Positions 1,288-32,779 of a stretch of DNA of 64,000 nucleotides are shown one piece after another. The DNA lies in contig OZ251225.1 in the NCBI GenBank assembly GCA_965240325.2, forward strand, positions 1,860,001-1,924,000, written 5' to 3'. The translations under genes were made by a program, and so were the position numbers. Position 1 is the first letter of the stretch, and every line of letters starts with the position of its first letter. Origin of the DNA: Rebecca billardiae RCC1528. Taxonomy: Eukaryota; Protista; Haptophyta. The notes beneath the pieces were generated by a model. The model saw only the letters and a program-made list of their open reading frames with translations, was not told the DNA's origin and did no database searches.

Positions 1288-1636
1288 GAAACCAACACAT
1301 ATAATATCAATACGACTCAACAAACAGGGACGCTGGGGCTGCACAGATATTGTAACTGGTAGAGAGAGAATCTAAGCAATCAGCAGCCTTGTAACGCATG
1401 AAGCTAAACGGGTGTTATCATACAACGTCCGAACACTTAGCAGTTAACTACAATAATTCACCGCCATATCAGCAGTATCATACCTGGCGGAACAACACGC
1501 TCCTCGCGAATCTTCCGAAGGTCCACTCGTTAATGACAGATTCACGAATCACGTGAACCCTCTCGCCCTCATCAAACCATTCACCATACTGTAAACCGAT
1601 TCACAGCTACACTTCACAACTTTTTAAATTCCCCTT

Positions 1637-1687
1637 TGGCCAGCCCCCAACCAACCACCACCCTCACCCAACCTCAAACCACTGACC
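1637..1687 (+). repeat. 51-bp dispersed direct repeat, copy 1 (copy 2 at 7707-7757)
   Basis: tggccagcccccaaccaaccaccaccctcacccaacctcaaaccactgacc is identical at both positions. Confidence 0.9.
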
Positions 1688-1870
1688 CATTCTATGATTT
1701 AACGACACAGGTAGGACGACGCGGGTCTCCTGATTCGTCGGCGGCAGTGCCCGATCGTTGACCGATACACCAACTAACGCTGAAGAACAGGTTCGGTAGG
1801 CCACGCACCCAGTCGCCCGATGCAGGCAAGGCCGGGTGGTCCAGACACGCCGCGGAGATAACCTGCGATC

Positions 1871-2638
1871 ATGCACGAAGACGTGTGCATCACGGCGCCG
1901 AACGCCGGGCGAAGGGGAGCAGCACAACCGGCTCTCTCGATCGGCGCACCACGGGCGCAAGGCTCGTCAGAGCCAACGCCGCCACCGTCGACCCATCAAT
2001 CACACACGCCTCGGTCGACATCAACGGATGCGTGCGCAGACGCATTGCAAGCGATGCTGGGAGATCGCTTACACGATCTGCACGCCATTCTGCGCTCGCT
2101 TACGCCGTCACGAACAGCGCCGCCCGATATCGTACTGCTGCAGGCGGCTTACGATTCGAAACGATCCCAAAAACCGCGATCGTCCTTCTACCCGCGGGAG
2201 GCGGGGCTTACAACTTGCGATGGGCGCGTTCGGCTGCTTCGAAACGAGCTGCTACGCCGCGATCGCGCCTTACACGACGCCATCTTCAACTTGCAACCGC
2301 TACCACCTGCGCCGGCATCGCACGACCGGTGCCACTCATCTTGTTGCTCACACCAACCTCAACGCTCGCAACTAACATGTCTGCCTGCGTGTGCGAGCAC
2401 AGCAGCCACCACCGCTCCAAGCGTGACATCAACAGCACACGCGCCATCGTTGCTGCACGCCGGCTCGCCGTACGCACCGCCACCCGCGAAGAACGCGCAC
2501 GCCACGACCAATACACCTAGGCCCGTCGAACGAGTGAGGACCCGCACGCCTGACGCGCCCTGCACGCTCGGCAGCAGCGCTAGGACGAGCAGAGCGGGGA
2601 GGTGCCGACTCGTGGCAGCAGGCGCCATTCTCATCTGA
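1871..2638 (+). pseudogene. Uncharacterised ORF, possibly a diverged member of the repeat-borne family also seen at 18.1-18.9 kb and 6.3-6.7 kb
   Basis: LHAILRSL...DIVLLQAAY...CDGRVRLLRNELLRRDRALHDAIF aligns by eye with LHTALRTM...DIGLLQSQY...CKERLLRLRDIVDRLEPRLLATLF at 18.2-18.6 kb. Confidence 0.35.
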
Positions 2639-2991
2639 CTGACTGTCTCAAACCGGTAGAAAACCCGTTATTTTAGAGACACGGGCACGAGGGTGGCAGT
2701 GGCTGTCATATCATCATCATCTCCAAAAAGGCCCAAAATTTTCTCCGGCCTCGCCGGCCGGGCCTAAAGACTCAGCGGGGGGCTCTGCCCCCCTGCGCCC
2801 CCCGCGCCTGCGCGGCGGGCGGGACCTAGCTAAGAAACTGAGACTCCGTAGGCGCTCGGGCTACCGAACGGCTAAGAAACCGAGGCTAGCCGTGAGATCT
2901 CTGACTTCTTATTGCCCGCGATTGTCTGTAGGGCAGAGGGCGGCAGAGTGGACGCCCGCGGGCGCAGCGGACGGATGTCACACTGTGACGG

Positions 2992-3498
2992 GGCTCCGGC
3001 TCCGGTCCACCCCCCCCCCCCCCAGCTCCGTTACCTTGGCCCCGAGCCGAAGTCACCAAGCGGACGATGCAGCAGAGTCGCTTCCGACCCCCGATTTATG
3101 ACTTCAACGAGAAATGTCGCAGCAGCATCCGACCACCTCCCAATAGCGGTTCAGACTCTATTTTTACTATGTAATTACCCGTCCCTTACTCAGATTTCAG
3201 CACAGTCCGGGAGCGTTCCGGATACGTGTATACATATGCGAAAAGGGTCCCCGGGCTGGGTATTTATTTATTATAGAAAATAGCAGACGAGTCTGAACCT
3301 ATTGGAGGTGTGGCTGATGATCCATCTGTAGGGCATCTCAGGCCGCCTAATCGGGCTAATGTCGTCCAAGGGACCGCCTGGGGTGGTCTAGGAGCTATTG
3401 TAGATCATCAGAGGCGGCGATCCCGCCGATTGCAGTGTCATGATGTAACGCTCCAGTGACCGGACTGGGGAGGGGGGGGGTGGACCGAAGCCGGAGCC
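2992..3498. mobile_element. Degenerate ~500-bp foldback/MITE-like palindrome
   Basis: Outer arms ggctccggctccggtccac(C)n-ag (2992-3024) and ctggggag(G)n-tggaccgaagccggagcc (3465-3498); inner arms ccacctcccaatagcggttcagactc (3133-3158) and gagtctgaacctattggaggtg (3289-3310); central tgtataca. No clear TSD. Confidence 0.6.
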
Positions 3499-3605
3499 AC
3501 GGATGGATGCGTCGTAACGTATGTCACACGGTCCATGAGGAATATTGCAGCCTGGCGTTGCAGCAGCCAAGCGTAGGCTGCCACGGCCCGCGCTGCCTCC
3601 GGAGC

Positions 3606-4886
3606 TCACCGGTCATGACCCACCGCAAGCTCAGAGTTCACGACCAGGACCATTGCCACGGCGCGCGCTGTCGCGTCTGTGAGGTCTGTCGCGACATCGT
3701 ATCGCAGGCTGCGCGCGTCGCTGCAGGCGCGCGAGGAGTTGAAGGCCAGGGCACGGACCTTTCGCACCTTGCCGTAGCTGTTGTCCAGCATGACGTGATG
3801 CTTGTGCATGAGCAAGGCCATGATACTCGCATGCAGCCTATCCGTTACAACCACCGAGGCAGTCGACAGGAGCTGCATGCCCGCCTTGACCATGTACCCA
3901 TACGGGTAGCGCATGCCAGACCGGGTCCCTTTCAGCGCACCGGACTGCAGCTTGTGCAGGTCTGGCGCGTACCGCTCCAGCGCATCTCTCCAGTCCACAA
4001 TGTCGAACGTGCAGCAGCGTGGCGACAAGCCGCGCTCCGCTCGGAGCGCGCGAATGGCCGCGGAAATCGACGCCTCTCGAGACGATGCCGGCGATGTGCC
4101 CCCGGGCCCGCTCGCAACCACGGCGCTCTCCCTGTCGTTCCGCAGCAGGAAGAGGATGTGCTTTGCGTGGTGCTGCGGCACAGGCCGGGGCCGGGGAAGC
4201 GGGCCGAGGAGGAATGCCATGTCCGGCGCGGAGATGTGTCGCACCGCGGGCATCTGCTGCAGCGCCCACAGGTAGCTGTCCTCCTGCCGCCACAGGATGG
4301 TGAGATTGGCCGGCCCAGCCTGATTTATCATGGCACTGTCACGGAGAGCGGAGCGCGCGCGGTTGTAGTGGTGGCTCTGAGGCAGCTGGAGCACCGACGT
4401 GCCCGCACTCAGAAGCGTTTTGATTCGCTGGAGCCGAATTCCCTGCACCCGCGTGTAGATGTCCCCCCAGTTTCCCCCCGCGTGATAGAGGAGGAAAGAC
4501 ACGTTGCTCAGGAGGTCGGTGGGATCGCCGCCCCTCTCCTGAATGCACTTCTCACCGTAGCCTGCAGACTGAGGCCCGATGCAGACCAGGATGCGGTCTT
4601 CGCTCCAACCAAGATGTCTGAGCGCCGTCAGTTCGGCCGCAGAGAGCATGATGTCCCCGATGTTTGAGTGAGTCGCGGGATCCATGAGCACAATGCTGCC
4701 AGGTTGCGCGGGTGACACAGGCATGTTCGCCTGCAGGATGCGGTACAGCCGCGCTTGGATGGCGGTGATGCATGTTCGCCAGGCGATCGATGCATCGTCA
4801 GCAGGAGGAGATTCCGGCGCTGCCCATACCGGCAGCAGCAGCAGCAGCGCCCACGCCAGCGTGTGCCTCGTCCGAGGCGCCGCCAT
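3606..4886 (-). CDS. Polysaccharide pyruvyltransferase family protein (EpsI/EpsO/Pvg1-like), signal peptide or anchor
   Basis: 426-aa ORF; N-terminal LAWALLLLLPVWA; motifs HSNIGD, GGNWGDIY, QLPQS, APDMAF, FLLRNDRE, VVTDRLHASIMALL, DNSYGKV. Confidence 0.88.
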   Translation of the reverse strand: MAAPRTRHTLAWALLLLLPVWAAPESPPADDASIAWRTCITAIQARLYRILQANMPVSPAQPGSIVLMDPATHSNIGDIMLSAAELTALRHLGWSEDRILVCIGPQSAGYGEKCIQERGGDPTDLLSNVSFLLYHAGGNWGDIYTRVQGIRLQRIKTLLSAGTSVLQLPQSHHYNRARSALRDSAMINQAGPANLTILWRQEDSYLWALQQMPAVRHISAPDMAFLLGPLPRPRPVPQHHAKHILFLLRNDRESAVVASGPGGTSPASSREASISAAIRALRAERGLSPRCCTFDIVDWRDALERYAPDLHKLQSGALKGTRSGMRYPYGYMVKAGMQLLSTASVVVTDRLHASIMALLMHKHHVMLDNSYGKVRKVRALAFNSSRACSDARSLRYDVATDLTDATARAVAMVLVVNSELAVGHDR

Positions 4887-5019
4887 GCGCGACCCGGGCA
4901 GGTCCAGACTCCAGAATATGCATGTTCCTGATGGATTTTGTATTTTTGTTGCAGCGCTTTACATCAGCTTTCGGGAGCGCGGCTGAGGAACCGCGGCCCA
5001 TCATCGTCTCGACGGCACC

Positions 5020-5634
5020 ATGATGGCGCACGTCGTTATCACCGCGAGCGTGCTCTCGGCCTCGCAAGGCTGCACGCGGCGAGGGGCGCTCAGCTTCGCC
5101 GGGCGTGCGGTCGGTGTGATCGCCGCGCACCGCCTTCCGAGCGTTCTCAGAGCGACGGCGGCACCCCCCATCGCCGTGATTGAGGAGGAGCTCGGGTACA
5201 TGCCCGTGCAAGACGACAAGGGCCGCACGCGGTACGCGCCGAGCCGGGTGCTTGAGCCGTCGACAGAGCAGGCAGTGCGCCTCGCAGACCACCTGCATCG
5301 CTCTGGTGCAAAGTTTTACGGCGCCTTCTGGTGCCCGCACTGCCGCAACCAGCGGCGCATGTTCGGCAAGGATGGCGTGCAGCTGGTCAAGTACATCGAG
5401 TGCGACCCACGCGGCGTCGGCTACAGGCGTGGGCGGTGCGAGAGCGCGCTCGTCGACGGTTATCCGACTTGGGTGCTGGGGAAGAAGCGCATGTCGGGCG
5501 AGCACTCGCTGGCTGAGCTCGCGCGATTCTCGGACTACCCAGGGAACTTCGATGCAGAGTTCGAGGCTCGCAGTCCGGCCGCCCTGGGCATGATGGCAAG
5601 CGCCAAGGGCGGGCCTGGGAGCGCGTGCAATTGA
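5020..5634 (+). CDS. Thioredoxin-like disulfide oxidoreductase (LTO1/VKOR C-terminal Trx-type domain), probably plastid-targeted
   Basis: LADHL..SGAKFYGAFWCPHCRNQRRMFGK..YIECDP..C..VDGYPTW..SGEHSLAELA; N-terminal RR-containing presequence; divergent from the pyruvyltransferase with a 133-bp spacer. Confidence 0.85.
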   Translation: MMAHVVITASVLSASQGCTRRGALSFAGRAVGVIAAHRLPSVLRATAAPPIAVIEEELGYMPVQDDKGRTRYAPSRVLEPSTEQAVRLADHLHRSGAKFYGAFWCPHCRNQRRMFGKDGVQLVKYIECDPRGVGYRRGRCESALVDGYPTWVLGKKRMSGEHSLAELARFSDYPGNFDAEFEARSPAALGMMASAKGGPGSACN

Positions 5635-6228
5635 CCTTTGGTGCACGCGCGCACGGGTGCGGGCGTGGTCGTGCCTCTGCCGGTTGGTGCGTTGGGCTCG
5701 TATGCTAGCTGGCGGGCCTGCGGGCCTGCCCCCTGCTTTTACTGCAGCGGTTGCCGACCTGGCGTCGCACAGTGTTAAAGGCCGGACCTCGTGGCACCGG
5801 CCGGCGCCGCAACGGCGCAACGGTCAACGTACTGGTCATGATCGAGACTGGTGCATGCAGCGCAGTGACGTTAGCGTAACTATAACTAAGTTCGACATCA
5901 CTGGCTCGCGCTAGATAGATTAATTGCTATACGACGGTATAGCCGTGCTACATAGTAGCTTACAGCACAGTCATCACGACAGCTTATTAAATTTTAATAA
6001 CACATTCTAAGCAGCTTTTAATTTTAAAGCTAGGCGTCTGCTAGGCCGCAGCTCAGCAGCCCAGCTCCGGCCGGCGCCCGCCCCCCCCGGTCCGACTCAC
6101 CACTCACAACACTCAACAGGTCTACTACTGGTTTGACCGGGTCCTGCCCCGCCCCCGGCGAGTCACCGCGTAGTAATTTAGTCGTACGTCTCAGCAGTAA
6201 TAAGCTGTTAGTGAATATATATGTATAT

Positions 6229-7540
6229 ATGATCGGCTACGCCGATCTTCGGGTAGTAAACAACGAGGTTGAGGGCGCACGGCCCTACTGGTACCGTATG
6301 TAATAGTCGTCGCGTTCTTCACCGAATCACGATGCGCGCGCCCGGCGCGTCGCCGTGCACGGTGCAGGAGGCGCGGGCGCGAGTAATCGACGCGGTCGAC
6401 GGCCCGGGCCTCGGGGGGCTGCGCCGCCTGTCGAACTCGACGCGCAGCAGCCGCAGCGCCTCCGCCCGGTGCGCGTCGGGCAGCCCTATTGTCTGTGGCC
6501 GCGCGCAGCGCGGAGATCGCGCTCGGCAGCTCGCCCGTCTCAGCCTCGCACAGCCTCGCGCGCTCGGCGGGATCGGCGCAGCGTCGGACGAGCTCGCTGC
6601 GGGGAAGAGCGTCGCGAGCAGCCGCGGCTCGAGCCTGTCTATCTACGACCTCCCGCAGCCGCAGTAGCCGCTCCTTGCACGCCTTTGTCTGTCAGCCTCG
6701 CCGCCGCGTCGATGCACTCGGTGCGAGGGCCGCTGTGGCTGTGCGCGTCGGTGCCGCCGCGGGTGCTGTCGGCCGACGGCCCGGAGCGCGAGGACTACTG
6801 CGAGCACGGGCGAGAGGGGAGCACGGCGTCGCCCGTAGCATATGCCAACTCGCCATCATCGCGGGCTCGCCGCTCGCAGATCTAAGCCTGTGGCTCTCGT
6901 GTCAGGCACGGTCAGGCATCCGTCGAGTGAGCGCCAGAGCCCCTCCTCACGGTCAGCGCGCGGCTCGCGCGCCAAACGCCTGCCCATGCGCCAGTCAAGC
7001 CGTGGATGGTGACTCGAGACCGGCGGACGAGAGCAAAACAGATGTGCGCGGTCCAGCTCGTGCTGCGAGGACTCGCCCAGCCTCTGTCGCGAGCAAAATA
7101 GATAGATGTGCGCGGTCCAGCTCGTGCTGCTCACGAGGACTCGCCCAGCCTCGTCGGCGTCGCCCGCAGATCTGCGCGCGCTGCTTGCCGCGCCGCCATG
7201 CGCAGCCGTCAGCACGCCGCACGCGGCTCAGCCATCACAGCTCGGCCATGGTCATGGACGGCGCGAGCGTGAGCGGTGAGGGTTGGGCGAGCGACTTCTG
7301 AACATGCCGAGAGCCTCAGCTGCGCGGCGTGCGGCGTGGCGCGCGCGGGCGCGCGAATGGTCAGCTACGAGCCGGTCGACAACGGCCGCGTTTGTGCGAC
7401 CGAGTGACGACGTGCTCGGTTGGAAAACGCACTGGGCCGAAGAGGCATGGCAGGGCGGGGCGCGCGGGATGAACGAGGCACGAATGCAATGCCGACGGCC
7501 GTTGGGACCCGCCGCAGATCTGCGCGCACCTGCGCTGAGT
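6229..7540 (-). repeat. Left outer arm of a large degenerate inverted repeat; contains a decayed copy of the 18-kb ORF
   Basis: 6229-6685 is the reverse complement of ~18540-19002; 7430-7540 is the reverse complement of ~17749-17862, with small indels. Confidence 0.85.
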
Positions 7541-8700: not shown

Positions 8701-11700
8701 ATTCGAAACTGGTGTAACCATGATGTCTCGAAATTTGGTGAACTTGTCCTTGGGTAGTGCCTTGGTCAGGCAATCGGCGATGTTTTCCGATGTGTGCACC
8801 TTGGTGATGTTGACTGCACCGAGGTCGACACAATCTCGAATAAAATGGTGTCGTACGTCGATGTGCTTGGTGCGCTTATGATGAATGCTGTTCTTTGAGA
8901 GATCAATCGCCCCCTTGTTGTCCTCGTGGATCACAATGGGAGTCTTTGGAATGTTGAGGATATCGCTGATGATGTCGCGTAGGTAAACTGCCTCTTTGGC
9001 TCCTTCCGCGAGAGCGACATATTCGGCCTCACATGATGAGAGGGTTGTGATTGACTGCTTGAAGGTGCGCCACGATACTGGGCCGTCAGCATGGAAGTAG
9101 ATATAGCTTCCGGTCGAGCGGCGATCTTTTGTATCGTTGGCCCAGTCCGAGTCCACAAACATCTCCGTTCGTGGCTGAGTAGTAGCCGTTGATGTGAAAG
9201 TGATGCCGGAATTCTTTGTCCCGGCCAAGTACCTGAGCACTCGCTTGGCACCTTTAAGGTCGTTCGAGCTTGGGCTTGCCATGTGCCTTGCCAACATATT
9301 GACTGCATAGCTGATGTCGGGTCGGCAGGTGTTCATGATGAATAGTAGCGCTCCGACAATTGCTCGGTAGGTCTTTGATTCCTCCGGCGAGCACGATGAT
9401 GAATCGTCTGTCTCGACTGCTGTCGGATGCTCTGCTGCCGATCTGCACGGGTTGTCGACGGGCGTAATGTCGCTCATGTCGTGCTTCTTGAGGAGATCGG
9501 TGATGTACTGTGACATGGAGATAGTCGTCGACTTGGGCCCCTGGGCGATACTCATGCCTAGGAAAGTCGTTGCTGGTCCCAGATCCCGGAGGGTGAATTC
9601 TTTTCGAATTTCTCCGATAATCGAGCTGGGTCTTGCGCTGTCGGGGGAGCTGCTCAGAATAAGCAGGTCGTCCACGTACACTGCGATGACGTCGATGATG
9701 TCTCCTGAGGTGCGGACGAAGATGCACTCCGACTGTGTGAGTTTCTTGAATCCTTTCTCTCGCAGTTTCTGGCTGAGGCGGATGTGCCATCGTCTGCCGC
9801 TCTGCTTAAATCCTGGAAGGGCCATATCCCAGTCAGCCGCAACCACGTGTCCCTCGGGTGGCTTGAGGGCACACGGGTACAGCGGGGGTAGCGTAGTGTA
9901 GATCTTCAGGCCGTCCTCCAATGGGGCTTGGAGGTACGCCGTACTCACGTCTGCGGAGTGGATGATCCAAGGTCTTTCTGGTGTTCGTAGCTCCGTCGTC
10001 AGTGCCAATAGGAGGCGTACGTTCTCGTACCGGATAGTAGGCGAGAATACCTCGTCGTAATTGACTCCTTGAATCTGGCGGAAGCCTTGACCAACCAATC
10101 TTGCCTTGTACCGTTCGATGGTACCATCTGGATTGGCTTTGACCTTGAAGACCAGCTTCGATGGGATAATTGCTTTCCCTTTGGGAACAATGACGGGCGT
10201 GAATGTGCCCAGCCTGTCGTGGGCCTCGTATTCTTCCATGATAGCCCTTGTCCAATCGGATGCTTGCTTGCTCTCCATCGCTTCCTTGAACGATGTAGGT
10301 ACCGGGATATCTGATGCGAGCTGCGCGAGCTGCGCGCGCGCGCGCGCGCGCCGCGTCGGCGGGAAGTATGACTTGCCAGTCATGTTGCGAGTCCGCTGTG
10401 GGCGGCGATCGGCGGAGGGAGGAGGCTGCTTTGGCTGCGGTGGCGTATTGCTCTGCGATGGTCCGCCTCCAGCTCCGGGGCCGTCTCCATCACCGTCGTC
10501 GCCGTTGCCATCATCTCCCTTCTCGTCGTCGTCGGGTTTGTCCCTGTCGTCCTTGTCATCGTCGTCTGATTCCTCGTCCGGCGATGGCGGATCGTCTCCT
10601 CCGCGCTCGGAGTCGCTGTCGGCGTCACTGCTGCTGCTGGCAAACTCTTCGTCGCCCTCCTCGTTGGTGTTGCTGTCACGGGTCTTACCAGCATCTGCAC
10701 CTTGAGGAGGTCGCCGAGCGCTCCACGCCAGCAGGGGGTCCCGAATTTCGCGGATCTCCTTGAAATGCGTAGAGATTCGATCCAAAATGACTTGCTCGTT
10801 GAACTTGACGTGCCGAGTGATGACGATTTTCCCGTCGTCGGCACTCAAAACGATGTATCCGTGCGACCGCTTGATGGTGCCTCGCTCGAAGATACCGTCA
10901 AATCCGTATCCCAGTAAGATGCCCTCCCGCGCGCGCGGGAGTAGCTTGTTCTGCTTGTTGATCGACTGTACGAGGTAGATGCAGGGCGAGCCCCAGACTC
11001 TCAGCTTTTGCAGGAAGGGCCCGGGCGAAGTGCCAAACATCAACTCGTGCGGTGAAACCAGCTTGCCATCGCTGGTAGGATGCTTGCTCATCAGGTTGCG
11101 TTGCGCGGCAGCGCACTTGGCTGCCCAATACCACCATTTGTGGTGTACGCCTGAGAGGTACAGCATTGTCCTCGCGTCATTCATGATGACTCCGAGGCCA
11201 CGTTCGGCGACGCCGTTCAGCTGCTGCGTGTGGGGGGGCGACATGTAGTTGCATAGCATGTCGTACCTGCGAAGGACTCGGTTCCAATTCTTTGAATGTA
11301 ACTCTCGGCCTCCGTCGAGGTGAATGGTGCATCCGGCGATGCCCTTGTTCTGCATGGTGGCGGATAGAGAGTTGGCTCCCATCTCGCTGGCCATGAGGTC
11401 GAGCTTCTCCGGCGCTTCAGCCTTGTTTTGCATGTCGTAGAAGCGCATGTATCCGGAAAAATCATCGATGAATAGAGTTCCCCACCTTGGAGTCTTTGCG
11501 GGCAGCCCGTTGATGGGCCCGATGACATCGTTGTGGAGCATCTCGAGCGGTCGAGTTGTTCTCTCACGTGTGCCCGGGAACGGCTTGGCCTTGAACTTGG
11601 CAACGTCGGAGGGCTGGTACGTGCAGGGCGATGCCTCCGACATCTTGTCATTCGCGCGGTAGGTTGCGCGTACACGCTTGATATCGGCATATCCTAGTCT

Positions 11701-14700
11701 GGATTGCCAGAGCGTGATCTTCCGCCCGTTCTTGATCGGGTCGACGTCTGGTGGCACGTCGTCCGCGGTGGCCGGCATGGCTGTCTCGGCCTTGGGTACG
11801 ACTGCCTTGAATCCGACCGTGTTGTCGGGGCGCAAATGAACCCTCTTGGGGCCGATGCGGATGTATGGTCGTTCGTCGAACACCACAGCCATTCCGACCG
11901 CGGCGAACGCGTTGACTGAAAAGAGAGTAGTATCGAGATCTTCGACTCCGACGACGTTTTCCAGGCACACCGGCACGGTTGTGTCTGAGTCGGCGTCGAG
12001 TAAGTATACGTACATGTCGCCTGCCTTGGATGCGTGCAGCTCAATGTCGCGCTTGGCAACCTTGACAGACATGCTGATCGGGTGAGCATTGTGTAGCAGG
12101 CCGAGGTTGATATCGACAAATGATTGGGACGCGCCCGAGTCCAGATACGCGTATTGCGTCGGCTCGAGATCTGCGTCATCGGGTTCCGGGTCGATGTCCT
12201 CGTCTTGCACCATCTGGGCCAGCGGCCTCCCCGCCCGCTTTTGGGGCGGAGGTACTTTGATGAACTTGCCGTCGCGCCCGCCGGGCTTGGCGGGCGGCCT
12301 GAAGTTGCCCTGCCTTGGTGCGCCGGGCGGCCTGGGTGGCCGCAAGTCTGGATGTAGCTTCCAGCACCGCTCTGCGGTGTGATTGCGCAGCCCGCAGTGC
12401 GAGCACGTGACGGCTGGTTGTCGGCGGTCCGCCTCCTCAGTATTGAGAGCGTGCGCGGGACCGCCCCGCTTGGGGTCACGTTGCGTTGCCTGTCGTCCCT
12501 TGGGCGACTGAGTCCAACGCCTGTATGCGTCCTCGATCTGGGCGGTGAGCTGTTCGGTCTGCGCCACGCATTGCTGGGGCGACATTGAACCGTAAATAGA
12601 GATGACGGTCGAGTAGACCTCTGGGTGCTCGTGCATCCCGTTGTACAACTTGAAAACGAGGAGTGTGGCGTCGTCTAGCTCTCGATAGCGTGATGCGCGT
12701 ACCATCTCCACCGTTTGCTTGATCATCTCAGGGCCGCTCACCGGGGTCGGTCGGTCCGGGTAGAGCTTCTTGAACTCAGCTCGGAGCTCCGACATGGTCG
12801 ATACGTTCAGCTCGTGCTCGAAGATTTCGAGCAGAGTATGTAAATTCAGGAAATTCTCATTCGGGTTCACGATGTGCCGTTTCGACTCGAGGTACGAAAA
12901 GAGACTCGGCAGCATCATGTCCTTGATACGCTTGAAAAGTACTTCCACCGATCGCTCGTAGACGATCGTCATCTGCATGATGGTGGTGTCAGCATCCATG
13001 TTTGCGAATGCGGTTGCGTACGGTTCCCGAATAGCATTTTCGGCTGTCCACACGGCGGCCTCAGCCAGCTCGTATCCGGAGAGCCTGGCTTCGACGAGGG
13101 TGACCATGGACGACGTAGTGTCGGTCGCTCTTCCCTTGAAGGAAGCCTTGACCTCGGTGACTGCGTCCTTGATCGCTCCGTGGATAGCCATTTTCGATTT
13201 GATTGTGAAGAAATTCAGCTTGTAGCTTCCGACGCCAGGCTGGCTTGTCTGCACAGCCATCATTGCATGTGCGTCGGGCAAGTAGGTGATGCAAGCTTCG
13301 CCTCCATTTCTGCGCGTTCGTGGTGACGCTTCGAGCGAGCTTGTCTCAATGTGGTCCTCTGCTGTGGCATAGCTGCCCATGTCCGACGATGTAGAAGACT
13401 CGTCCCCATCGCTGCTCTGCTGTGCGCTGTTGTCGTCACCAGTCGTGGCAGGTGGGTAGGTTGTGACACCACCAGGTGGGCCGTCGTCAGCCGGCGAGTG
13501 TCCCTCGCTCGCTTCAGAAGTCAGCCCATAGAACTCTTTGTGCAGGAAGCATGCGACACCTGGCTGTAGGAGTGCGTCATTACAATGGAACATGAGATCG
13601 AACTTGCTTTGGTGAAGCTCGTCCCTCTCCCGCACATAGTCTCCAACTGTGTAGTTGTGACCTTGCCGCTCTGCGGCTGCTGCGATGAAGCCTCCCGAGT
13701 AGATAGTGCATCGTTTGGATGGCCGCCAAGGGCAAATATCATCGAGGCTGGCGCCTGCGTCGTTCACGACGCTCAGGCTGCGGCGATCAGCCGCTGCGAC
13801 GGGTCCGTCCTGCCGGTGGAAGTGAATGCCATCATCATCGATGTCAATCCCGTCGTTCATCGCTGCAAACTGGATAATCTGCTCACATTCGAGCTGATGC
13901 TGAACTTGGATGGCGTCTGCGCATCGGTAGCTGCAGACTCTGCCCATCCCACAGATGATGCATTCGAGGGTGCAATGCATCGATGTGCACGACTGATTGT
14001 CGCATGGCTGGCGCGACTTCGGATCATCGTCGTCAATCTCACTCCACTGGCTGCAGTAGATGCCGTTGCCCATGTTCTTGCGCGCCGGGATCTCCGGGAT
14101 GATGCAATCGAAGGTCTCGCCTACACCATACCAACTGCTGACAGCCAGGAGGGGGTAAGTGCACAGGTATGAGGACATGCGATGCTTGTCGCGCGCAGCG
14201 TGTTCCCATGCTGCCTTGTTGCAGCACAAGATGGATTGGGGCCGGTCACTCAAGTCGCTGCACATACCTCCAATGGTGAAGATGTCGTCTCCGATGTCCA
14301 TCGGATCCTGGTAGACGAGTCCGTTGATGTCGATGGCCGCATCCTTGAGCACGTTGAGGACATCATTGAGGCTCAACGCGTCCGGCGGCGGGGTCGAGCC
14401 GCGCGCGAGGTCGTCAAGCTGCGGCGCGAACTCCTCGAACGGCTCCGACCGCTCATCGCCAGGGATCTGGCCCGGGTCGAAGGGGTAGTGGCTGTGCGGC
14501 TCCTTGAAGTCGGTCACGACGCTGATGGTCGGGAGGTCGCCCGCCATCGCGTCCGCCTCCGGCGCTGCGACGCTGCTGCCTCCATGCTGGTCGTGTCCAG
14601 TCGCAGTCGGCGACGCCGAGTCCGGGGATTCCGTCTGTGTCGTAGCGTCGCGATGCAGCGACTGCGACGACGGCGAGTCGTCCTTCTGCGAGGACGGGGG

Positions 14701-21048: not shown

Positions 21049-23040
21049 CTACGGCGCCGTCACGGCCTGGACAAAGTCGAGCGTGATCGCCACCGTCTCG
21101 TCGAGGTGGCGCCGCGCGACGGGCACGCCGTCGCGGCGAGCGAGGGCGAGCGCGAGCTGCAGCGCGTTCTTGATCTGGCGGCCGTTCAGCTCGTGCCGCG
21201 CGAGCGCGCCCACGTCGACGGCGCCCTCGTCCGCGCCGGCGCGCCCGAGCAGGTTGCGCCACACCTGCGCGCGCCCCGCCTGGTCGAGCGGCTCGTAGCG
21301 GAGGGCGCACTGCACGCGCGACTGGAAGGCCGGGTCGAGCGACTCGACGCGGTTGGAGGTGAGGAAGAGCACGCCGGCGTAGTACTCGAGCAGCCGGAGC
21401 ATCACGCACACCATCGCGTTGCGCACGAGCGCCTCCTTCGCGCGGCGCTCGAGCAGCATCTCCGCCTCGTCGATCAGCACGAGAGCGCGCCACGGCGCGC
21501 ACAGGGCGAACACTTCCGAGAGGGCCTTCTCGAGCGCCTCGGGGGTGGTGCCGAGCTCGCCCATGGAGACGACGTACAGCGGGCGTCCGAGCAGCTCGGC
21601 GATCGCCTCCGCGGTCAGCGTCTTGCCCACGCCCGGCGGGCCGTGCAGCAGGAAGATCGATCCCTCGCCCTTGCCGGAGATGAGATCGGCGCCGCCGCCC
21701 GCCGCCGAGCCGCCGCCGTCGGGGTCGGCCGAGTGCACGACGAGGGCCTCGATGAGCCGCTTGCGCCCGGGCGGCAGGACGAGCTGCTCGAACGCCTGCC
21801 TGTTGAAGTGCACGTCGCTCAGCCCGTCGACCAGCGCGATCCCCCACCGCTTGACCGCGAACGAGAAGCCCGCGACCGTGGGCCACGTTCGCCACACGAC
21901 AGCCTCGGGCATCGGACCCCTGAGCAGCAGAACTCCGGACTCATCCGTCGACTCGTCGGCGGCGGCGGCGCCGTCGGAGGGCGCGGAGCCGGCGCGGCCG
22001 GCAGCCGCGCGTGCGTGGTGCGCGAGCGCGCCGAGCACGCCCGACACCGCCTCGCTCGCCAGCCCGGAGCCCTTGCCCGTGTGCACGCTGCGGCGCAGCG
22101 CCGCAGCGGTGTCCACCATCATGCGCCCCGCGACCGGGCGCGCCGGCACGTCCGCCTGCCCGGCGGCGCTGAGGGGCCGCACGGCGGTGAACGCGTCGGC
22201 GGTGTGCTCCATCAGCGTCGGCGCCTGCGCCACGCGCTCGTACGCGCGCCCGCGCGCCACCAGCCGCTCGCGCGCCTCCGCCGTGAGCAGCTTGAAGTCC
22301 ATCCCGGACCTGACGGGGCGCGTGCCGGCAAACTCGCCGACCAGATGGTTGTGCTCGATCAGCGCGAAGCGCTCGCCGACGGCGACGGCGCACTCGAGCG
22401 CGGCGTAGAAGGTGCGCCCCTCGCCGAAGAGCGTCTTCGTGCGCGAGTAGTAGCAGCCGCGCACGAGGAAGCCCGTCGGCGCGCCGTGCACGCCCGTCGC
22501 GACGCCGTGCTCCACGACCTCGCGGCCAGGCGTGAACAGCTCGGCGAGAGAGTCAAAGTCGACGGCGCCCTCGGCGACGGTGCGCCGCGCGTGGGCGATG
22601 GGCTCGGCGTACCAGGACTCGATGGTGCTGATCAGCTGGTCCAGCCCGAGCACCTCGACCGGGCCCTCGTCCGCCTGCGGCAGCCGCACGCCGAAGGAGC
22701 TCGCCTGCTGCAGCAGCCTCCACGTGCCCACGCGCACGCGACTCTGCCGCGCATGGCGTGCGTCGGCTGTCTCGGCGTCTGGCGCCGAGTTGAGAGCCAT
22801 GGCTTCATTGTACAGCTTCACGTCGTACTGCAGCGCGCGCAGGAGGCCGAGCGCGTCGTACAGCCGCTGACGCTCGGTGCGCACTTCCTTCTTGCCCACC
22901 GAGCCGCTCATCCGCGCGTTGGTGATGCGGCGCACGACGGTGGCGAGGTGGATCGCGTTGCCGGGCTTGTCTTCGAAGACGACTAGGTTGCCCTCCAGCG
23001 TGAAGTGCGCCGCGTCGGAGGGGGTCTCGGCCGCCGCCAT
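21049..23040 (-). CDS. AAA+ ATPase of the fungal/protist single-AAA family; start placed at MAAAET
   Basis: Walker A LLHGPPGVGKTLTAE, Walker B LIDEAE, RNAMV..LRLLEYY.GVLFLTSNR, LDPAFQSRV, LNGRQIKN. The ORF-track start (23151) lies inside a transposon TIR and is spurious. Confidence 0.92.
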   Translation of the reverse strand: MAAAETPSDAAHFTLEGNLVVFEDKPGNAIHLATVVRRITNARMSGSVGKKEVRTERQRLYDALGLLRALQYDVKLYNEAMALNSAPDAETADARHARQSRVRVGTWRLLQQASSFGVRLPQADEGPVEVLGLDQLISTIESWYAEPIAHARRTVAEGAVDFDSLAELFTPGREVVEHGVATGVHGAPTGFLVRGCYYSRTKTLFGEGRTFYAALECAVAVGERFALIEHNHLVGEFAGTRPVRSGMDFKLLTAEARERLVARGRAYERVAQAPTLMEHTADAFTAVRPLSAAGQADVPARPVAGRMMVDTAAALRRSVHTGKGSGLASEAVSGVLGALAHHARAAAGRAGSAPSDGAAAADESTDESGVLLLRGPMPEAVVWRTWPTVAGFSFAVKRWGIALVDGLSDVHFNRQAFEQLVLPPGRKRLIEALVVHSADPDGGGSAAGGGADLISGKGEGSIFLLHGPPGVGKTLTAEAIAELLGRPLYVVSMGELGTTPEALEKALSEVFALCAPWRALVLIDEAEMLLERRAKEALVRNAMVCVMLRLLEYYAGVLFLTSNRVESLDPAFQSRVQCALRYEPLDQAGRAQVWRNLLGRAGADEGAVDVGALARHELNGRQIKNALQLALALARRDGVPVARRHLDETVAITLDFVQAVTAP

Positions 23041-23195
23041 CGGAATCCGCGTCGGGCGTGGACGACGGCGGAAGTTGACGACAACGCCGCGAGCTTGTGT
23101 GGTAAGACTTGGGGCGATGGCCGACGCGACGGGAGTGGTGGGTTTGGCCAAAGAAATAGAGGGGGTAGAACCGAAAGCTCACCTCCCGGACTGAA

Positions 23196-24881
23196 ATGAC
23201 CGGGCTTCAGAGTCCGGACGGCTTGCCCCAGCTCCGCGCCGCCGCACTTGGCAAAGACTGGCGTCGTCCGCCCCTGATCCCCGCAGCCATGCTCACCGAT
23301 GCCGCACGGGCGGAGCTCGTCGCCGTATTCCAGGCGAAGAGCGCCGAGTGGGAGAAGAGGAAGACGAAGGGGAACGCCAACGGCTTGCCGCAGATCGACC
23401 GCGTGCTGGAGCTGAAGCTCATCAAGGTGCGGCACAAGCTCAGCCAGCGGCAGATCGCCCTCGCGTACAAGCGCTACCTCGATCCGCCCCAGCGTGTGAA
23501 GCTGGCGCCGGTGAGCGGCTTCGTCGAGTCGACGCTGAAGCAGCTAGGCGACAGGTCGCTCATCGTCAAGCGCGCCGTCGAGTTCTGCCGGACGAGTTCT
23601 CATGCGGCGATGTTGATGGGTGATCCCACGCCAGCCCGCTTCGACAAGCTGGCCTCGGCGCTCGGGGACGAGCTCGAGGAGCGCGTGCGGGCCATGGTCG
23701 ACGTGATGGCGACTCACCGCGCGAAGTCAACCACGGCGATCGGCAACGTGCGCTCGGCCTTCCACTCGGAGCTGCGTGAGACACGACAGGCGTTTATCCA
23801 GGAGCACGCGGCGCGCGCAGAGGAGGCGATCCGGAGCTTGTCAGCTGTGAACGCTCGGCCCATGTTGCACGTCGCGCTCCTGGACGAGCTGGACGAGGCG
23901 CTCTTCGCGGCCACGTGCGAAAAGCTCGCCGCCCACCCACCCGTCCAGGTGCCACCGACCTGCTCGCCGGATGTGAAGGACCTCCGCGCCCAGCTCCTGT
24001 ACTACCTCACCGGCTGGCTCATGCGCAAGGTGCAGGCTGCCGCTTGCCGCGGTACCAAGGCGCTCCTGGAAGCGGGGCCCTTTTGGCTCGCGTGGCTCAA
24101 GGCGAACGGGCTCGCGAGCAGCGATGTCGTGTCCCTCTGGGATCTGCCGTCGGTGCGTACGCTCAGGCGCAACGTGCACGACTCTGCCCTCTACCTCCCA
24201 CGCAAGGAGCTATTCATGCTCGTGTGGAGGATGGAGGAGCACGTCGTCGCCGTCCTCACTCGGGACCACATCGCACTCGTCAGGGGCGACATCATGCTCG
24301 AGGCGTCCAAGCTCATCCTGGCTAGTGCGGAGTGCGCAGCGCTCTTCGCTGCCACGCTGCCCGACCCCAAGCCTGCCGAGGCGGAGCAGCTGGCCCTCTT
24401 CGAGTTCCTCGTGGACAAGTACATGCGCGTGCGCGGCCCGAACTTTGCACGCACGGCTCTCGATCACATGTTCACGTCGCTCACCGTGGAGAGCCAGCGG
24501 GCCAACCTGCGCACCAAGCTCGCTACGGTCGCGGCGAAGTCGCCCGGCGCCCAGCTCAGCGTGCCGGCGCCCGAGGCGATGCTGACGCATCGTGAGTCGC
24601 TTGCCAAGGCGATTGCGCTTGGAGACGTCGACGAGGCTGATGGCGAAGGGCAGTCAGCAGAGGAGGTGAAGGCTGATGAGCGCATGGTGGACTCGTTCTT
24701 CGCAGACATCGAGAGCGAGCAGCAGCGCTGCCTGCTCGACGACGAGGTCAATGACGGTGCTGATGTCGAGCACCTCAACTTGATCACGAAGGGCGTGCAG
24801 GCGTGCTTCGGCAATGCAGCCAGCGCGGGCGGCAGTGCAGACCCCTTTGCTGTGAGCGGCGATCATGCTGACGACGAGTGA
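23196..24881 (+). CDS. Transposon-encoded 561-aa protein: homeodomain-like N-terminus plus region resembling the P-transposase C-terminal domain; no DDE core seen
   Basis: Intact ORF starting 47 bp inside the left end; LLYYLTGWLMRKV...SALYLPRKELFMLVWRMEEHV...LVDKYMRVR resembles the Y-x-x-G-Y/W...L-x-x-P...E...R pattern of P/THAP9 C-termini; acidic tail. Confidence 0.7.
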   Translation: MTGLQSPDGLPQLRAAALGKDWRRPPLIPAAMLTDAARAELVAVFQAKSAEWEKRKTKGNANGLPQIDRVLELKLIKVRHKLSQRQIALAYKRYLDPPQRVKLAPVSGFVESTLKQLGDRSLIVKRAVEFCRTSSHAAMLMGDPTPARFDKLASALGDELEERVRAMVDVMATHRAKSTTAIGNVRSAFHSELRETRQAFIQEHAARAEEAIRSLSAVNARPMLHVALLDELDEALFAATCEKLAAHPPVQVPPTCSPDVKDLRAQLLYYLTGWLMRKVQAAACRGTKALLEAGPFWLAWLKANGLASSDVVSLWDLPSVRTLRRNVHDSALYLPRKELFMLVWRMEEHVVAVLTRDHIALVRGDIMLEASKLILASAECAALFAATLPDPKPAEAEQLALFEFLVDKYMRVRGPNFARTALDHMFTSLTVESQRANLRTKLATVAAKSPGAQLSVPAPEAMLTHRESLAKAIALGDVDEADGEGQSAEEVKADERMVDSFFADIESEQQRCLLDDEVNDGADVEHLNLITKGVQACFGNAASAGGSADPFAVSGDHADDE

Positions 24882-25143
24882 CTTCGACTACGATGTATCA
24901 TCAATGATTGTCAGTTAGCGCGTCATCGATGATATATATATCGTCACGTGTCATCATATCAGTAGTCACAGATATATTATATATACATATAGGTGAGCAG
25001 CGCGCCACGGCGCCGGGCACTGCTGTGTCTGTATGACTCGGGGCAGTGACACTGTCACTGTGAGTCCTGCTACTGCTAGTAGCAGCGCTCGCCGCCGGAT
25101 TACTGTATGTAATTTACGTACGTACTTATTACATAGCAGATTA

Positions 25144-26148
25144 TTACGCGACTATACGTATCCTCATCCTGTCGGCGCGCTGTTGCATCGGCGCCCAGTC
25201 GGCGAGTTCGGAGGACGACGTTTTGTGGCGGACGACGGTGGGGCGAGGACGACGGGCGCTGGCGCGCCGCGAGGCGGCCGCAGCCCTCATCCATCCTGGA
25301 GGCGGTGCCTCCGGAGCAGGGGGCGGCGGGGCGGGAGGCGCGAGTTGGTGCCCGACGCCGAGCTTTCGTTCGAGAAGCGCATACGCGCTCACGAGCCCGC
25401 CGCCCGCGTCTCGCCGGTCATTCACGCGCAACGGCTTGTGTGCGAGGATGAGGCCGAGTGTTCTCGCCCGAGGCTCGAGCTCCGTGCCGTGCGCGCCGTC
25501 CGACGAATCGAGCGACACGCCCACCGTGGGCGCGACAGACCGCAGCACCTCGGCGAACTCGTCGCGTGCGAGCAATGCAGCGAGCGCGCGCTCCTCGACA
25601 GCCCCATCCTCGTAGAGGGGCGCCAACAACTGCTCGAGCTGGAAAACAGGAGCCGGTGGGCATAGATAGCTCGGCTGCCCGGCCGGCTTCACGTAGTACA
25701 CCATCCGTCCGTCTACGACACCGGGGACATGCCGCGCTCGGTCTTTGATGATGTCGTGGGGCGTGCCGTTGCCCGTCAGGTGCTCCGCCAGCGCCTTTGC
25801 CATGTTGATATCCCCAACCCACCAGTTCGCCGCCAACCTGTAGTGCGCACGAAACGAGGGCGGTTCGGGGGCGCCAAAACGGGTGAGATTCGTGTCCCTC
25901 AAGGTTCGAGCGGTGGGTAAGCACACTGCCCCGCTGGCTCCATACTTTAGGGACACGAAATTACGCGCAGTATCTCTGTGTTGGGCAGTCGCGCGCCACG
26001 CGGGCAAGTTTGGGGCTCGACGCTCAGGCCCGGTCGCGGGCGCACCTGGAGACACCATCGCCGGCGCCGCTCGCGTCGTCGGTTTGGTCGGTGGAGTTTC
26101 TGCGTGGTCGCATGGCTTCAAGCCCCGGGCTGCACGTCGGGCGTGCAC
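25144..26148 (-). pseudogene. Second, convergent ORF of the P-like element, possibly a decayed or internally deleted transposase
   Basis: RNFVSLKY...LPTARTLRD resembles the LPSxxTL helix-turn-helix segment of P transposases; lower-GC codon usage at ~25650-26000; no complete catalytic triad; start uncertain. Confidence 0.35.
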
Positions 26149-26332
26149 TGCACGAGCCGAGAGTCAGCGCGGCTGCGACGAGGTGCAGGGCGAGGAGCAA
26201 CCAGGGCATCTCCGCGCCTGAGGGCGTGACGAAGCTGAAGCCCGGTGTTCCGGAGCGAGCAGTCTGAAACCATATTAATCGGGAGAGCTTTCGGTTCTAC
26301 CCCCTCTATTTCTTTGGTTTGGCAGTCCGCGG

Positions 26333-28371
26333 TAGCCTGTCCGGCCCCCCTCCGCTGGCTACGGGGGGCCTGCCGAAAGTCTGCTCTAGCGGGACCCCCG
26401 CGCACTGGGGCTGCACTGGGCGCGAGCTCGGCGGGGACGTGGCGAGCGGGTCGGTGCGCGCCGCGGGCTGGGTGCGCGATTTTACCAACGTATCGGTCGA
26501 TCTGACCCTCCCCGTCGCGCCGCTCTTGCCCTCGCGGCCTCTCTTCCCCCCAACACGGGTGCGCGCAGCCGCTTGAACAGCCTGGCTGCAGGTCGTTCAC
26601 AGACGGCGGGCCGCGTGCAACCTGCGCGGGTGAAGAGGGGTGGCTTGTTGCGTGGTTGCGTGGCTGACGCTCATATGTGGCCTTGCGAGCCTTTGTGTGC
26701 GAGATTACTTGCCCACATCCGCTCTCGCGTGTCATGCGCGCGTGTAACGTACACCATCGGATCTCCGCTGCGCTTGCGCTTGTCCACCTGCTGCCAGCTG
26801 GGCCAGCGTGGGGCCACTGCAGGCACTAAGACGGTGACGCCATATCGTTGACATGTTCTGTCGCATGCTTGTGGCCTTCGTCTTTGCCATCTGCGTGCTT
26901 GATATTGAAGGCAGTGCTTCTGGCAGGTGCATTCCTGAAGTTGCCCGTCGAGTCACCCTCGGCTCCCGCGTCACTGTGTTACACAGACTCACAGCTCCGG
27001 TGCGAGAGTGGGAATCATCAAGCATCGTCGCCCGCATGCTTGTGGCGTACAAGCACGCTCCGAGCGGGCAGGCTGCCGTCCCGTTCTCCGACGCAACGCG
27101 CCACAAGGTCATGTCGTTAGCGTGGCCGGGTTTAAAATTAAATCCACGGCGATGAATAAAATATTAAAAGAAACGAATATTGAGCAACCCCGCCCGCCGG
27201 CCAGGCCGACTACCTCCCCCACGGCTAGGCTGAGCGCCATCCCCGACCGCACCGGCGGCTGGCGTGAGCATCCACGCAGACTACTCTCACTAGCTTACTG
27301 CATCAACTCGGACCGTCACTCGTCAGCCGGGACCGACCGTCCGACGGCGGCAACGGCGTGACGACCGACGACTGCAAGTCACAGCGCGCGGCATCTCAGT
27401 GATCAGCATCGGCGACGACTCCCTCATCCGCGGCTAACGCGCTCACATCCTCCGCCTCCAATCAGTACTTCGACAGACGAATCAGGAGAGCTGCGTCCTC
27501 ATACCTGATGTGTCTTTAAATCCTAGAATTGTCAGAGTACAGTAGCGCTGTAGTGCAGCAGCGGCAGCAGGAGAGTGCGCACACCGCGCCGGCGACGTGG
27601 ACAAGCCGACGCTTGATCTAGTACGTTGCTGACTTCATCTGCCATCCGATGATCAGACGTGCGGTGCCCCATCACCCGAGCTATCCTGGGCACTGGCCTC
27701 TCAGCCTGGCGCGATGCCCGTCGTCACAGGTTGACACGAATGACGAGTCAGATGCCCATGTCGTTTTGGCTGCTGGACTCCGCTTCACAGTGCACACCTC
27801 CAGTGGACGGGAGGAACGTAACGCAGCGCGCGCACTTGCACTCGCCTGGATGCGAGCCCGTCAGAATGTCGACGATCTCGCGCGCGACGTGGATAGCCAG
27901 TGGCAGTGGCCTCGGCTGCTGCAAGGCGGGTCGCATACGGCATAGTGTTCGTTGCACGCGCGCATGACACGCGAGAGCAGATGTGGGCAAGTAACCTCGC
28001 ACACAAAGGCTCGCAAGGCCACACACGGGCGTCGGCCGCGTAACCACGCAACAAGCCACCCCTCTTCACCCGCGCAGGTTGCACGCGGCCTGCCGTCTGT
28101 GAACGACCTGCAGCCAGGCTGTTCAAGCGGCTGCGCGCACCCGTGTTGGGGGGAAGAGAGGCCACGAGGGCAAGAGCGGCGCGACGGGGAGGGTCAGGTC
28201 GACCAATACGTTGGTAAAATCGCACACCCAGCCCACGGCGCGCGCCGACCCGCTCGCCACGTCCCCGCCGAGCTCGCGCCCGGAACGACCCCAGTGCGCG
28301 GGGGTCCCGCTAGAGCAGACTTTCGGCAGCCTCTACACAGCCGACACAGCAGTGTAGAGTCGGACAGCCTA
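26333..28371. mobile_element. Non-autonomous MULE/Mutator-like element, 2039 bp
   Basis: 9-bp TSD AGTCCGCGG (26324-26332 and 28372-28380); ~420-bp TIRs (26333-26754 and 27945-28371) starting TAG(C/G)CTGTCCG; empty site present at ~32172-32190; no transposase ORF inside. Confidence 0.85.
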
Positions 28372-28839
28372 AGTCCGCGGCGGTTATCGCGTTATGACTG
28401 CCGCGTCGCTGCTCCGCCGCCGCCCGTGCCCCTCCCCGCTAGGTGGGCGTATACCCGGCCGGACGCGGGCTCGGCGCTCGCAGCGGCTCGCCGGAGTGAC
28501 CGGACGGTGACGAGATGTGAGTCGGAAGCAGCTCGCCTTTGCGGCGCGGGTACCAAGCGGAAAGTGAGCGTACCTGCAGGCGGGCCGACCCTCGGCGTGA
28601 CAGGCGCACCTTCGGGGCCGGTCAGGGCAGCCCACGTCGTGCAGCCGACCGCTTCCGCCGCGACTGCCCCCCGGCGCACCCTGCCCCGGCCGACGCCTGA
28701 GCACAGCGGCCCCGCCCGGGCCCGGGGCCCCCGGGCGGCAGGCCGCGGCGGCGCCGGCACACTCACGGACAGCCAGCGGCGCTCCTCCGCCTCCTTCGTT
28801 CTTCGTTCCTCGGTGTCCCCTCGGTGTGGCGAGCAGCGC

Positions 28840-29581
28840 GCGCATTCATCCCGCCCGGCCTCATGAAATTGCACCCGTGCTGCTTCTGGGTCCCCTGCGG
28901 CTTCCGGCGCTGGGCGCACAGTGGAGCGGAGTGTGAGGGGGCGGTGCGCTGCCGTCCATCGTGCGCGCTCTTCGCTCGTCACCACCCTCTGCCTCGCTCG
29001 AGCGAGGCGCGCGCTCCGCGCATTCTGCCTCGCTCGTGCGCCAGCGCGCTTGTATCCTGGGGATGACGCGTGCATCCGTGCTGCTTCGGCGTCCTCCTGC
29101 ACCGTCCGGCGGCCGAGCGCACAGCGGGGCGACGCGGGAGGTGCCGGTGCAGGGCCGTCCGTCGCGGTCACTCAGCGCTCATCGCCGTCTGCTTCGCTCG
29201 AGCGAGAGCGCCCTCAGCGCATTCATCCCGCCCGGCCTCATGCAATTGCACCAGTGCTGCTTCGGGGTCCCCTGCTGCTTCCGGCGCTGGGCGCACAGCG
29301 GAGCGGAGCGCGAGGGAGCGGTGCGCTGCCGCCCGTCGTGCGCGCTCCTAGCTCACCACCCTCTGCTTCGCTCGAACGAGCCGCGCGCTCCGCGCCTTCT
29401 GCTTCGCTCGAGCTCGAGCGCGCTTGTATCCTGGGGATGATGACGAGTGCATCAGTGCTACTCCTCCTGCAGCGTCCGGCGGCTGAGCGCGCAGCGGGGC
29501 GCCGCGGGAGGTGCCGGTGCGCGGGCGTCCGTCGCGGCCACTCAGCGCTCATCGCCGTCTGCTTCGCTCGCGCGAGAGCGC
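28840..29581. repeat. Two diverged tandem copies of a ~377-bp unit
   Basis: gcattcatcccgcccggcctcatg(a/c)aattgcacc starts at 28842 and 29219. Confidence 0.85.
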
Positions 29582-29799
29582 ACTCATCATCACCTTCCGC
29601 CACCTCGCTCGAGCTGTGGATGGAGCGCGCTTCGGCGGGGCGGGCAGTGGCCACATCCATGCTGCTACTTCTACGTCCTTCGGCAGCGCGCGAAGGCGGG
29701 GCGCATATCGATACGGACCAAGCCGCTCGCACGCGGCATGCTCGTGCCACGCACGCCGCCGCCGCTCGCCGCCGCTCGCCTGAGCCCGCACTCGCGCGG

Positions 29800-32132: not shown

Positions 32133-32779
32133 TGGGGCGATGGCCGACGCGACGGGAGTGGTGGGTTTGGCAGTCCGCGGCGGTTATCGCGTTATGACTG
32201 CCGCGTCGCTGCTCCGCCGCCGCCCGTGCCCCTCCCCGCTAGGTGGGCGTATACCCGGCCGGACGCGGGCTCGGCGCTCGCAGCGGCATCGCCGGAGTGA
32301 CCGGACGGTGACGAGATGTGAGTCGGAAGCAGCTCGCCTTTGCGGCGCGGGTACCAAGCGGAAAGTGAGCGTACCTGCAGGCGGGCCGACCCTCGGCGTG
32401 ACAGGCGCACCTTCGGGGCCGGTCAGGGCAGCCCACGTCGTGCAGCCGACCGCTTCCGCCGCGACTGCCCCCCGGCGCACCCTGCCCCGGCCGACGCCTG
32501 AGCACAGCGGCCCCGCCCGGGCCCGGGGCCCCCGGGCGGCAGGCCGCGGCAGCCAGCGGCGCTCCTCCGCCTCCCGCCCGCCCTCCCTGGCGTGGGATCG
32601 CCGCGCTGGGGTGGGTGCGGCTTGAGTCAGCGTCCACGGGGGGGGCGATGTGCTGCCGGGCGGGCGCTGCCTCGCCGCCCTGCCCCCCCCCGTGGCGACT
32701 GGCGGCCCCAGGCAACCCCTGCATCCGCCTATCGTAAACACCGGATCGCCAGAAGGAGCACGACGCGCGCGCGGTTATG
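32133..32779 (+). repeat. Second copy of a duplicated intergenic unit (uninterrupted, empty-site version)
   Basis: 32133-32574 matches 23110-23148 + 26324-26332 + 28381-28793; 32658-32779 matches 32014-32134. Confidence 0.9.

Follow-up and report, generated by a model that had tools for sequence, protein, structure and literature searches.

Transposases of P elements are treated as single polypeptides, and the role assigned to their C-terminal domain (CTD) rests mainly on one cryo-electron microscopy structure. A two-gene organisation is found in the PIF/Harbinger elements, which carry a DDE transposase and a separate DNA-binding protein, the two being regarded as necessary for transposition. 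In the fly P enzyme, the CTD is all-helical, and a disordered linker connects it with the RNase H domain. It is placed between its own protomer's RNase H domain and the partner protomer's GTP-binding domain, and touches transposon DNA as well as target DNA (PMC7776569). The cores of the P superfamily are defined by a D(2)H motif that follows catalytic aspartate number two (PMC4168063). The subject of this analysis is a P-type transposon of 3168 bp at 23149-26316 of a 64,000-nucleotide window from the haptophyte Rebecca billardiae RCC1528 (C7:1860001-1924000). This element is probably a non-autonomous, very recently moved deletion copy from a P clade whose transposase is split between two proteins. 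The bridging placement of the fly CTD suggests that such a domain could work as a separate polypeptide, which is why the family is read as having a split transposase.

The boundaries of the element were established by direct reading of the sequence. Perfect terminal inverted repeats (TIRs) of 32 bp, starting with CAAAG, lie at 23149-23180 (plus strand) and 26285-26316 (minus strand), and the 7-bp target-site duplication (TSD) GTTTGGC is present on both flanks, at 23142-23148 and 26317-26323. The first 24 nt of the TIR occur at 2 sites in the window, both of them element ends, where chance would be expected to give none. At 32133-32180 (plus strand), a 48-bp exact match runs uninterrupted across the insertion point with a single GTTTGGC. 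A 31-bp word spanning the insertion junction has 74 matches in the genome, many of them as same-strand pairs 3.8-4.3 kb apart; together with the paralogous match, this indicates that the element inserted into a repeat, and the uninterrupted paralogues define its boundaries. The same-strand pairing of this target repeat (23100-23148 with 26324-26332; 32133-32180) resembles the long terminal repeats (LTRs) of a small retroelement.

Inside the termini, a 12-bp motif, ACCGGGCTTCAG, is found at 23199-23210 (plus strand), 51 nt from the left end, with a second, inverted copy at 26235-26246 (minus strand), 71 nt from the right end. A shared subterminal word as long as 12 bp arose in 1 of 2000 shuffles of the two 120-bp subterminal stretches, and a diverged copy on contig C38 keeps the left motif at 11 of 12 positions and the right one at all 12. 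The two motifs are candidate protein-binding sites. An intact open reading frame (ORF) of 561 codons, ORF1 (23196-24881, plus strand), begins between the left TIR and the left motif. A first-pass annotation of this DNA had claimed the perfect CAAAG repeats, the 7-bp duplication, the subterminal inverted motif and the ATG at 23196, and each of these was confirmed. The local empty site that it described is also present, with the qualification that it is a paralogous copy of the repeat.

The assembly, which comprises 72 Mb in 41 contigs, was searched for other copies. Five copies of 3168-3170 bp were identified, one on C3, two on C7 and two on C23, all with the same 32-bp left TIR. The only differences among them are 4 substitutions and a 2-bp indel (at 24833) that alters the last ORF1 residues in two copies; such near-identity indicates very recent movement. 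Every one is flanked by its own, different 7-bp TSD. The diverged C38 copy is shorter (2128 bp) and decayed throughout; its TSD fits 7 bp if one additional A is permitted in the left repeat. Three further elements in the genome (C25/C2, C38 and C3) share homologous CAAAG...GGGGGTAG termini and 7-bp TSDs, giving a 7-bp TSD at 8/8 insertions examined (the five full copies and three related elements, from four related TIR families). The C25/C2 element (3047 bp) holds a decayed ORF1 and a transposase stump. The sole gene of the C3 element (3201 bp, TIRs of ~460 bp), which has two shorter relatives in the genome, is an intact ORF1-like gene at ~28% identity. ORF1 paralogues occur in three diverged TIR families of this genome at 28-38% identity. 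A 17-nt terminal motif, CAAAGAAATARAGGGGG, has 26 further sites in the genome with no partner at up to 1 mismatch; these may be more family members, short non-coding derivatives (miniature inverted-repeat transposable elements, MITEs) or broken ends.

The origin of the window form was traced to contig C21, which carries an unpaired left end with ORF1 just inside it. The start of the second window frame, ORF2, recurs ~13 kb further on within a 1322-codon open frame. BLASTN of the window element against C21:1521588-1541587 gave three collinear blocks, and the first gap between them is a Copia-type retrotransposon inserted in the A+T-rich spacer between the two genes. Being nested in the master P-like element, the Copia insertion is later and very recent. 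This retrotransposon (L051 1951-9742; C21:1524538-1532329) is complete at 7792 bp, with a 2044-codon ORF containing RVT_2, 563-bp LTRs that are 100% identical, and the TSD TATAT. Without it, the C21 element measures ~6.6 kb and differs from the window form by a single deletion of 3447 bp (composite 10910-14356), the junction of which falls at 25296/25297 of the window, where composite position 10909 is joined to 14357. The deletion removed transposase codons 285-1317 plus the 3' flank and fused a dispersed-repeat fragment to codon 284 of the large ORF.

ORF2 (26148-25144, minus strand, 334 codons) consequently retains only the first 284 of 1317 transposase codons (26148-25297). Across these codons it differs from the 1317-residue C21 ORF by one substitution, while its final 50 codons are repeat-fragment and spacer sequence, out of context. 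No catalytic domain or Pfam match was found in ORF2. The earlier suggestion of a remnant of the N-terminal part of a P transposase was thus correct. The ATG assigned to that gene at 26273 does exist, but it opens a frame of only 51 codons, with a stop at 26118, that is not in frame with ORF2, whose first in-frame ATG is codon 31. The spacer (24882-25159) is collinear with C21 except for microsatellite-like indels and the Copia insertion site. It is followed by the dispersed-repeat fragment (25160-25296), LINE-like with 5'-truncated copies and ~94% identical to more than 100 genomic copies; the master element carries it as well, and the deletion breakpoint falls within it. An extent of 25160-25305, spanning the junction, was rejected for this repeat: its 9-bp overhang is an artefact of gapped alignment, and the master holds the repeat too. 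Its >100 copies share one end and are variably truncated at the other, which is typical of LINE-like retroposons.

Relative to the window, 4 changes in ORF1 of the C21 copy are non-synonymous and 1 is synonymous. The right repeat of the C21 copy lacks its outer 11 bp, so this copy is probably unable to move itself; it is probably not excisable and would still be able to supply proteins. As judged from its sequence, the window copy is not autonomous, with codons 1-284 of 1317 remaining and the single catalytic gene of the assembly residing on C21. The genome-wide check that had been proposed at first pass therefore returned both 7-bp TSDs at all five full copies and a longer copy, on C21. The autonomous partner predicted there was found in the form of this master, with its catalytic gene and with its own right end short by 11 bp.

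The full-length transposase of the family belongs to the P superfamily, as had been proposed from the window alone, on the evidence of Pfam, motifs, fold and the 7-bp TSD on every copy. The 1317-residue C21 ORF matched TNP-like_RNaseH_N (PF21787) at 31.9 bits against a cut-off of 24.6, the single match to this model in the assembly and the single match to a catalytic core. Its TNP-like_GBD (PF21788) score is weak (15.3 bits), and relatives in the clade score above the cut-off (25.7-28.6 bits). The transposase carries SDFPHLIKKLRN, the D(2)H motif, and the E motif DCLEHHFGQVR; in HMMER searches both align with the Drosophila P transposase 6P5A, the sole PDB sequence match, which is itself weak (E 0.2). 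Both motifs are conserved in the six clade members, and the RNase H, D(2)H and E motifs fall at residues ~810-1225. An AlphaFold2 model of residues 700-1317 was compared with PDB structures by Foldseek, and the top match was 6p5a_A (E 7.3e-15, probability 1.00), with RAG1 next at ~1e-4, some 10 orders of magnitude behind. Word-based protein searches with the transposase core or the six-sequence transposase alignment gave no match. A conserved Cys-rich motif, C-x9-C-x11-C-x2-C, is present at residues ~473-498, inside the part deleted from the window copy, and may serve in place of a THAP domain.

The C21 transposase ends ~90 residues after the catalytic glutamate. Among the six aligned clade members, all five stand-alone transposases stop 40-90 residues past the E motif, and they therefore have no CTD.

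A CTD-like domain is found in ORF1. ORF1 is predicted to have a homeodomain-like helix-turn-helix (HTH, residues ~29-101) and a P-transposase CTD-like domain (256-428), with a helical region between the two and an acidic, disordered tail after the second. Its model, built from the family alignment, has a mean predicted local distance difference test (pLDDT) of 79 and a predicted template modelling score (pTM) of 0.68; residues 30-430 are confident and all helical. The model has a fold match to the non-catalytic CTD of the Drosophila P transposase (6P5A chain B), all-helical and over the whole domain. When a 146-sequence ORF1 family profile was searched against 177,635 PDB sequences, 6p5a_B ranked 2, in an alignment that includes the motif GGL..PS..F......E. 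A three-sequence ORF1 profile returned nothing relevant among PDB sequences, a Pfam scan of ORF1 gave no family, and a word-based protein search with ORF1 recovered only ORF1 itself. An SGT1 identity for ORF1 was suggested by the ESM Atlas (score 0.88, low recognition) and was dropped, as no other search supports it. The resemblance to the P C-terminus noted at first pass is thus upheld by fold and weakly by profile, and not by any Pfam P-element model.

ORF1 belongs to a larger protein family. At E up to 1e-3, a HMMER profile seeded with ORF1 and its paralogues in the same genome retrieved 147 cluster representatives; the stricter limit of 1e-10 leaves 44. These relatives are mostly stand-alone proteins of 400-600 residues without a Pfam family, and they come from marine metagenomes, Tara and one MMETSP transcript. 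In metagenomic contigs L065-L067, L068, L069, L070 and L071, a P-like transposase comes next after an ORF1-family gene, in convergent orientation. L065, L066 and L067 represent one element at the same insertion and L070 is a close relative, so that at least 4 distinct metagenomic lineages show the convergent position. Pfam scans of the neighbours gave PF21787 at 28.5-31.8 bits and PF21788 at up to 27.3 bits, and the L066 transposase is 24% identical to that of C21 over 350 residues (E 6e-22). The L066 element itself (505-6326), found in a marine metagenome, is P-like and spans 5.8 kb with two genes; its ~380-bp TIRs start with CATG, as in Drosophila P. In a further protein, P0114, an uninterrupted 1342-codon ORF encodes a P-like transposase, a linker and a complete ORF1-like C-terminal half. 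As far as gene order tells, two convergent genes are the conserved layout of the family, in unrelated metagenomic contigs too. The two inward-facing genes reported at first pass are accordingly a family trait. The idea of a split transposase or accessory system put forward with them gains support from this pairing at the level of the family, and fails for the window copy, which is a deletion derivative and no working two-gene system.

A master of ~6.6 kb with two convergent genes gave rise to the window form by the single 3447-bp deletion. The derivative retained both ends, the subterminal motifs, an intact ORF1 and the 284-codon transposase stump. The catalytic gene of the master encodes a DDE core of RNase H fold bearing a GTP-binding insertion, and its product ends shortly past the catalytic glutamate. 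In the mechanism proposed here, ORF1 would be the second subunit and would bring a homeodomain-like DNA-binding domain and the CTD-like helical domain in trans. On this basis, the five copies were presumably mobilised in trans by the sole catalytic gene, in C21, and the window copy would provide ORF1 while taking its catalytic function from the C21 gene. The same scheme would have ORF1 associate physically with the transposase and be required for transposition. A complex prediction for transposase residues 700-1317 with ORF1 residues 250-440, made without alignments or controls, scored 0.00 and bears neither way.

Several results weigh against this mechanism. The profile match of ORF1 to 6p5a_B, at E 0.096, is weak and extends over just 48 residues. 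The Pfam P-element C-terminal model (Tnp_P_element_C) found nothing at E up to 10 in ORF1 and 75 relatives, and Foldseek of the ORF1 model against the PDB returned no match at E up to 0.001. On the transposase side, the model has a pLDDT of 62 from a six-sequence alignment, which is moderate confidence, and no THAP domain (PF05485) was detected in the C21 protein by Pfam at E up to 0.1. Finally, the five copies are too similar to reveal selection on ORF1.

ORF1 could alternatively be a CTD-derived DNA-binding regulator that damps or titrates transposition, in the manner of the truncated P repressors, with the transposase working without it. Persistence of ORF1 where the catalytic gene is lost, in the five window-type copies and in the C3 element with its only intact gene ORF1-like, would suit such a regulator, and truncated products that act as repressors are known from P elements (PMC7776569). 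However, known P repressors are N-terminal fragments and not C-terminal ones (PMC7776569). The absence of a CTD from all stand-alone transposases of the clade, the pairing kept across distant lineages and the fusion of both parts in one ORF together suggest a required part more than a brake, which makes a regulator an unlikely explanation.

More improbable still is a reading of ORF1 as cargo with no relation to the transposon, namely a host or orphan gene that was captured and whose likeness to the P CTD is a chance resemblance between helical bundles. The want of a Pfam family and of a Foldseek match in the PDB would agree with cargo, as would the atlas pointer to SGT1, weak and unsupported elsewhere. 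On the other hand, an unrelated passenger would not be expected in the same convergent position beside P-like transposases in at least 4 distinct metagenomic lineages and once as a fusion, nor as diverged paralogues in three TIR families of this genome. In addition, the fold search and the sequence profile independently select the same PDB chain, which is 118-135 residues long. That the 3.2-kb element is itself autonomous, with ORF1 and the 334-codon ORF2 forming a working split transposase, can hardly be credited: both ORFs are open and the five near-identical copies point to recent activity, but the RNase H, D(2)H and E motifs are missing from ORF2, which has codons 1-284 only and a tail from the repeat fragment, neither of the two ORFs has a match to a catalytic family, and the alignment to the C21 copy contradicts it.

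The split-transposase reading can be extended into a broader proposal: a P clade widespread among marine protists with a naturally split transposase, both subunits being needed, in which deleted copies holding only ORF1 are favoured and still supply, or compete for, that subunit. This is put forward tentatively, its chances being set a little short of even.

Other features of the window were also recorded. An AAA+ ATPase gene with DUF7025 and a fungal-type AAA lid lies at 21049-23040 (minus strand); the transposon sits ~100 bp upstream of its likely start codon and may thus affect its promoter. Several repeat pairs were found to the right of the element, namely an inverted pair at 26370-26757 and 27942-28329 (94% identity), a direct pair at 28372-28749 and 32172-32550 (99.7%) and a tandem pair at 28840-29216 and 29217-29586 (88%). 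The ~15 kb at 49000-64000 are 81% G+C, with constant strong GC skew (+0.5) and AT skew (-0.4); this stretch resembles an extended satellite, or a tandem array with strand bias, that reaches the window end.

No description of such a split P clade was found in the literature searched, which did not cover Repbase or subscription literature. If the reading is true, a natural CTD on a separate gene, together with a fused relative, would show that the CTD can act in trans, and the family would be a ready-made system for asking what the CTD contributes to synapsis and strand transfer. The analysis also sets an unannotated protein family, with at least 147 clusters in marine metagenomes and transcriptomes, in context and proposes its likely role. 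In this alga, a DNA transposon has been active very recently, and its one helper copy is probably immobile.

Compared with the Drosophila P element and its 87-kDa transposase (PDB 6P5A/6PE2), the present family shares the RNase H-fold DDE core, the GTP-binding insertion and the D(2)H motif. It also shares short perfect TIRs (31-32 bp), inverted subterminal motifs that are not equally far from the two ends, and an all-helical CTD fold in the system; internally deleted, non-autonomous copies moved in trans would be a further likeness. Unlike in Drosophila P, the CTD-like domain is on a separate, convergent gene, joined with a homeodomain-like domain. The TSD is 7 bp here and 8 bp there, a THAP domain was not detected here, and the transposase has 1317 residues against 751, with ~16% identity in the structural alignment. 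TSDs of 7 bp and, in some members, long foldback-like TIRs are features of Galileo and 1360 of the Drosophila P superfamily (PMC4168063), and the ~460-bp TIRs of the C3 element, with their homologous termini, parallel these. Galileo, however, has a single THAP-bearing transposase, with no separate CTD gene described.

PIF/Harbinger resembles the present family in outline through its two-gene organisation. It differs in belonging to another superfamily with a 3-bp TSD, and in having a Myb/SANT-like accessory protein rather than a detached piece of the transposase fold. The comparison with KP and other deleted P elements concerns the window copy itself. A KP-like repressor role for ORF2 would be speculation, since the stump has no recognisable domain and has lost the Cys-rich motif. 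As in KP and other deleted P elements, a single internal deletion has spared the two ends together with an N-terminal transposase stump, and deleted copies are more numerous than full-length ones. The element is an ordinary deletion derivative of a DNA transposon, and its family seems to represent a P-superfamily variant that is new.

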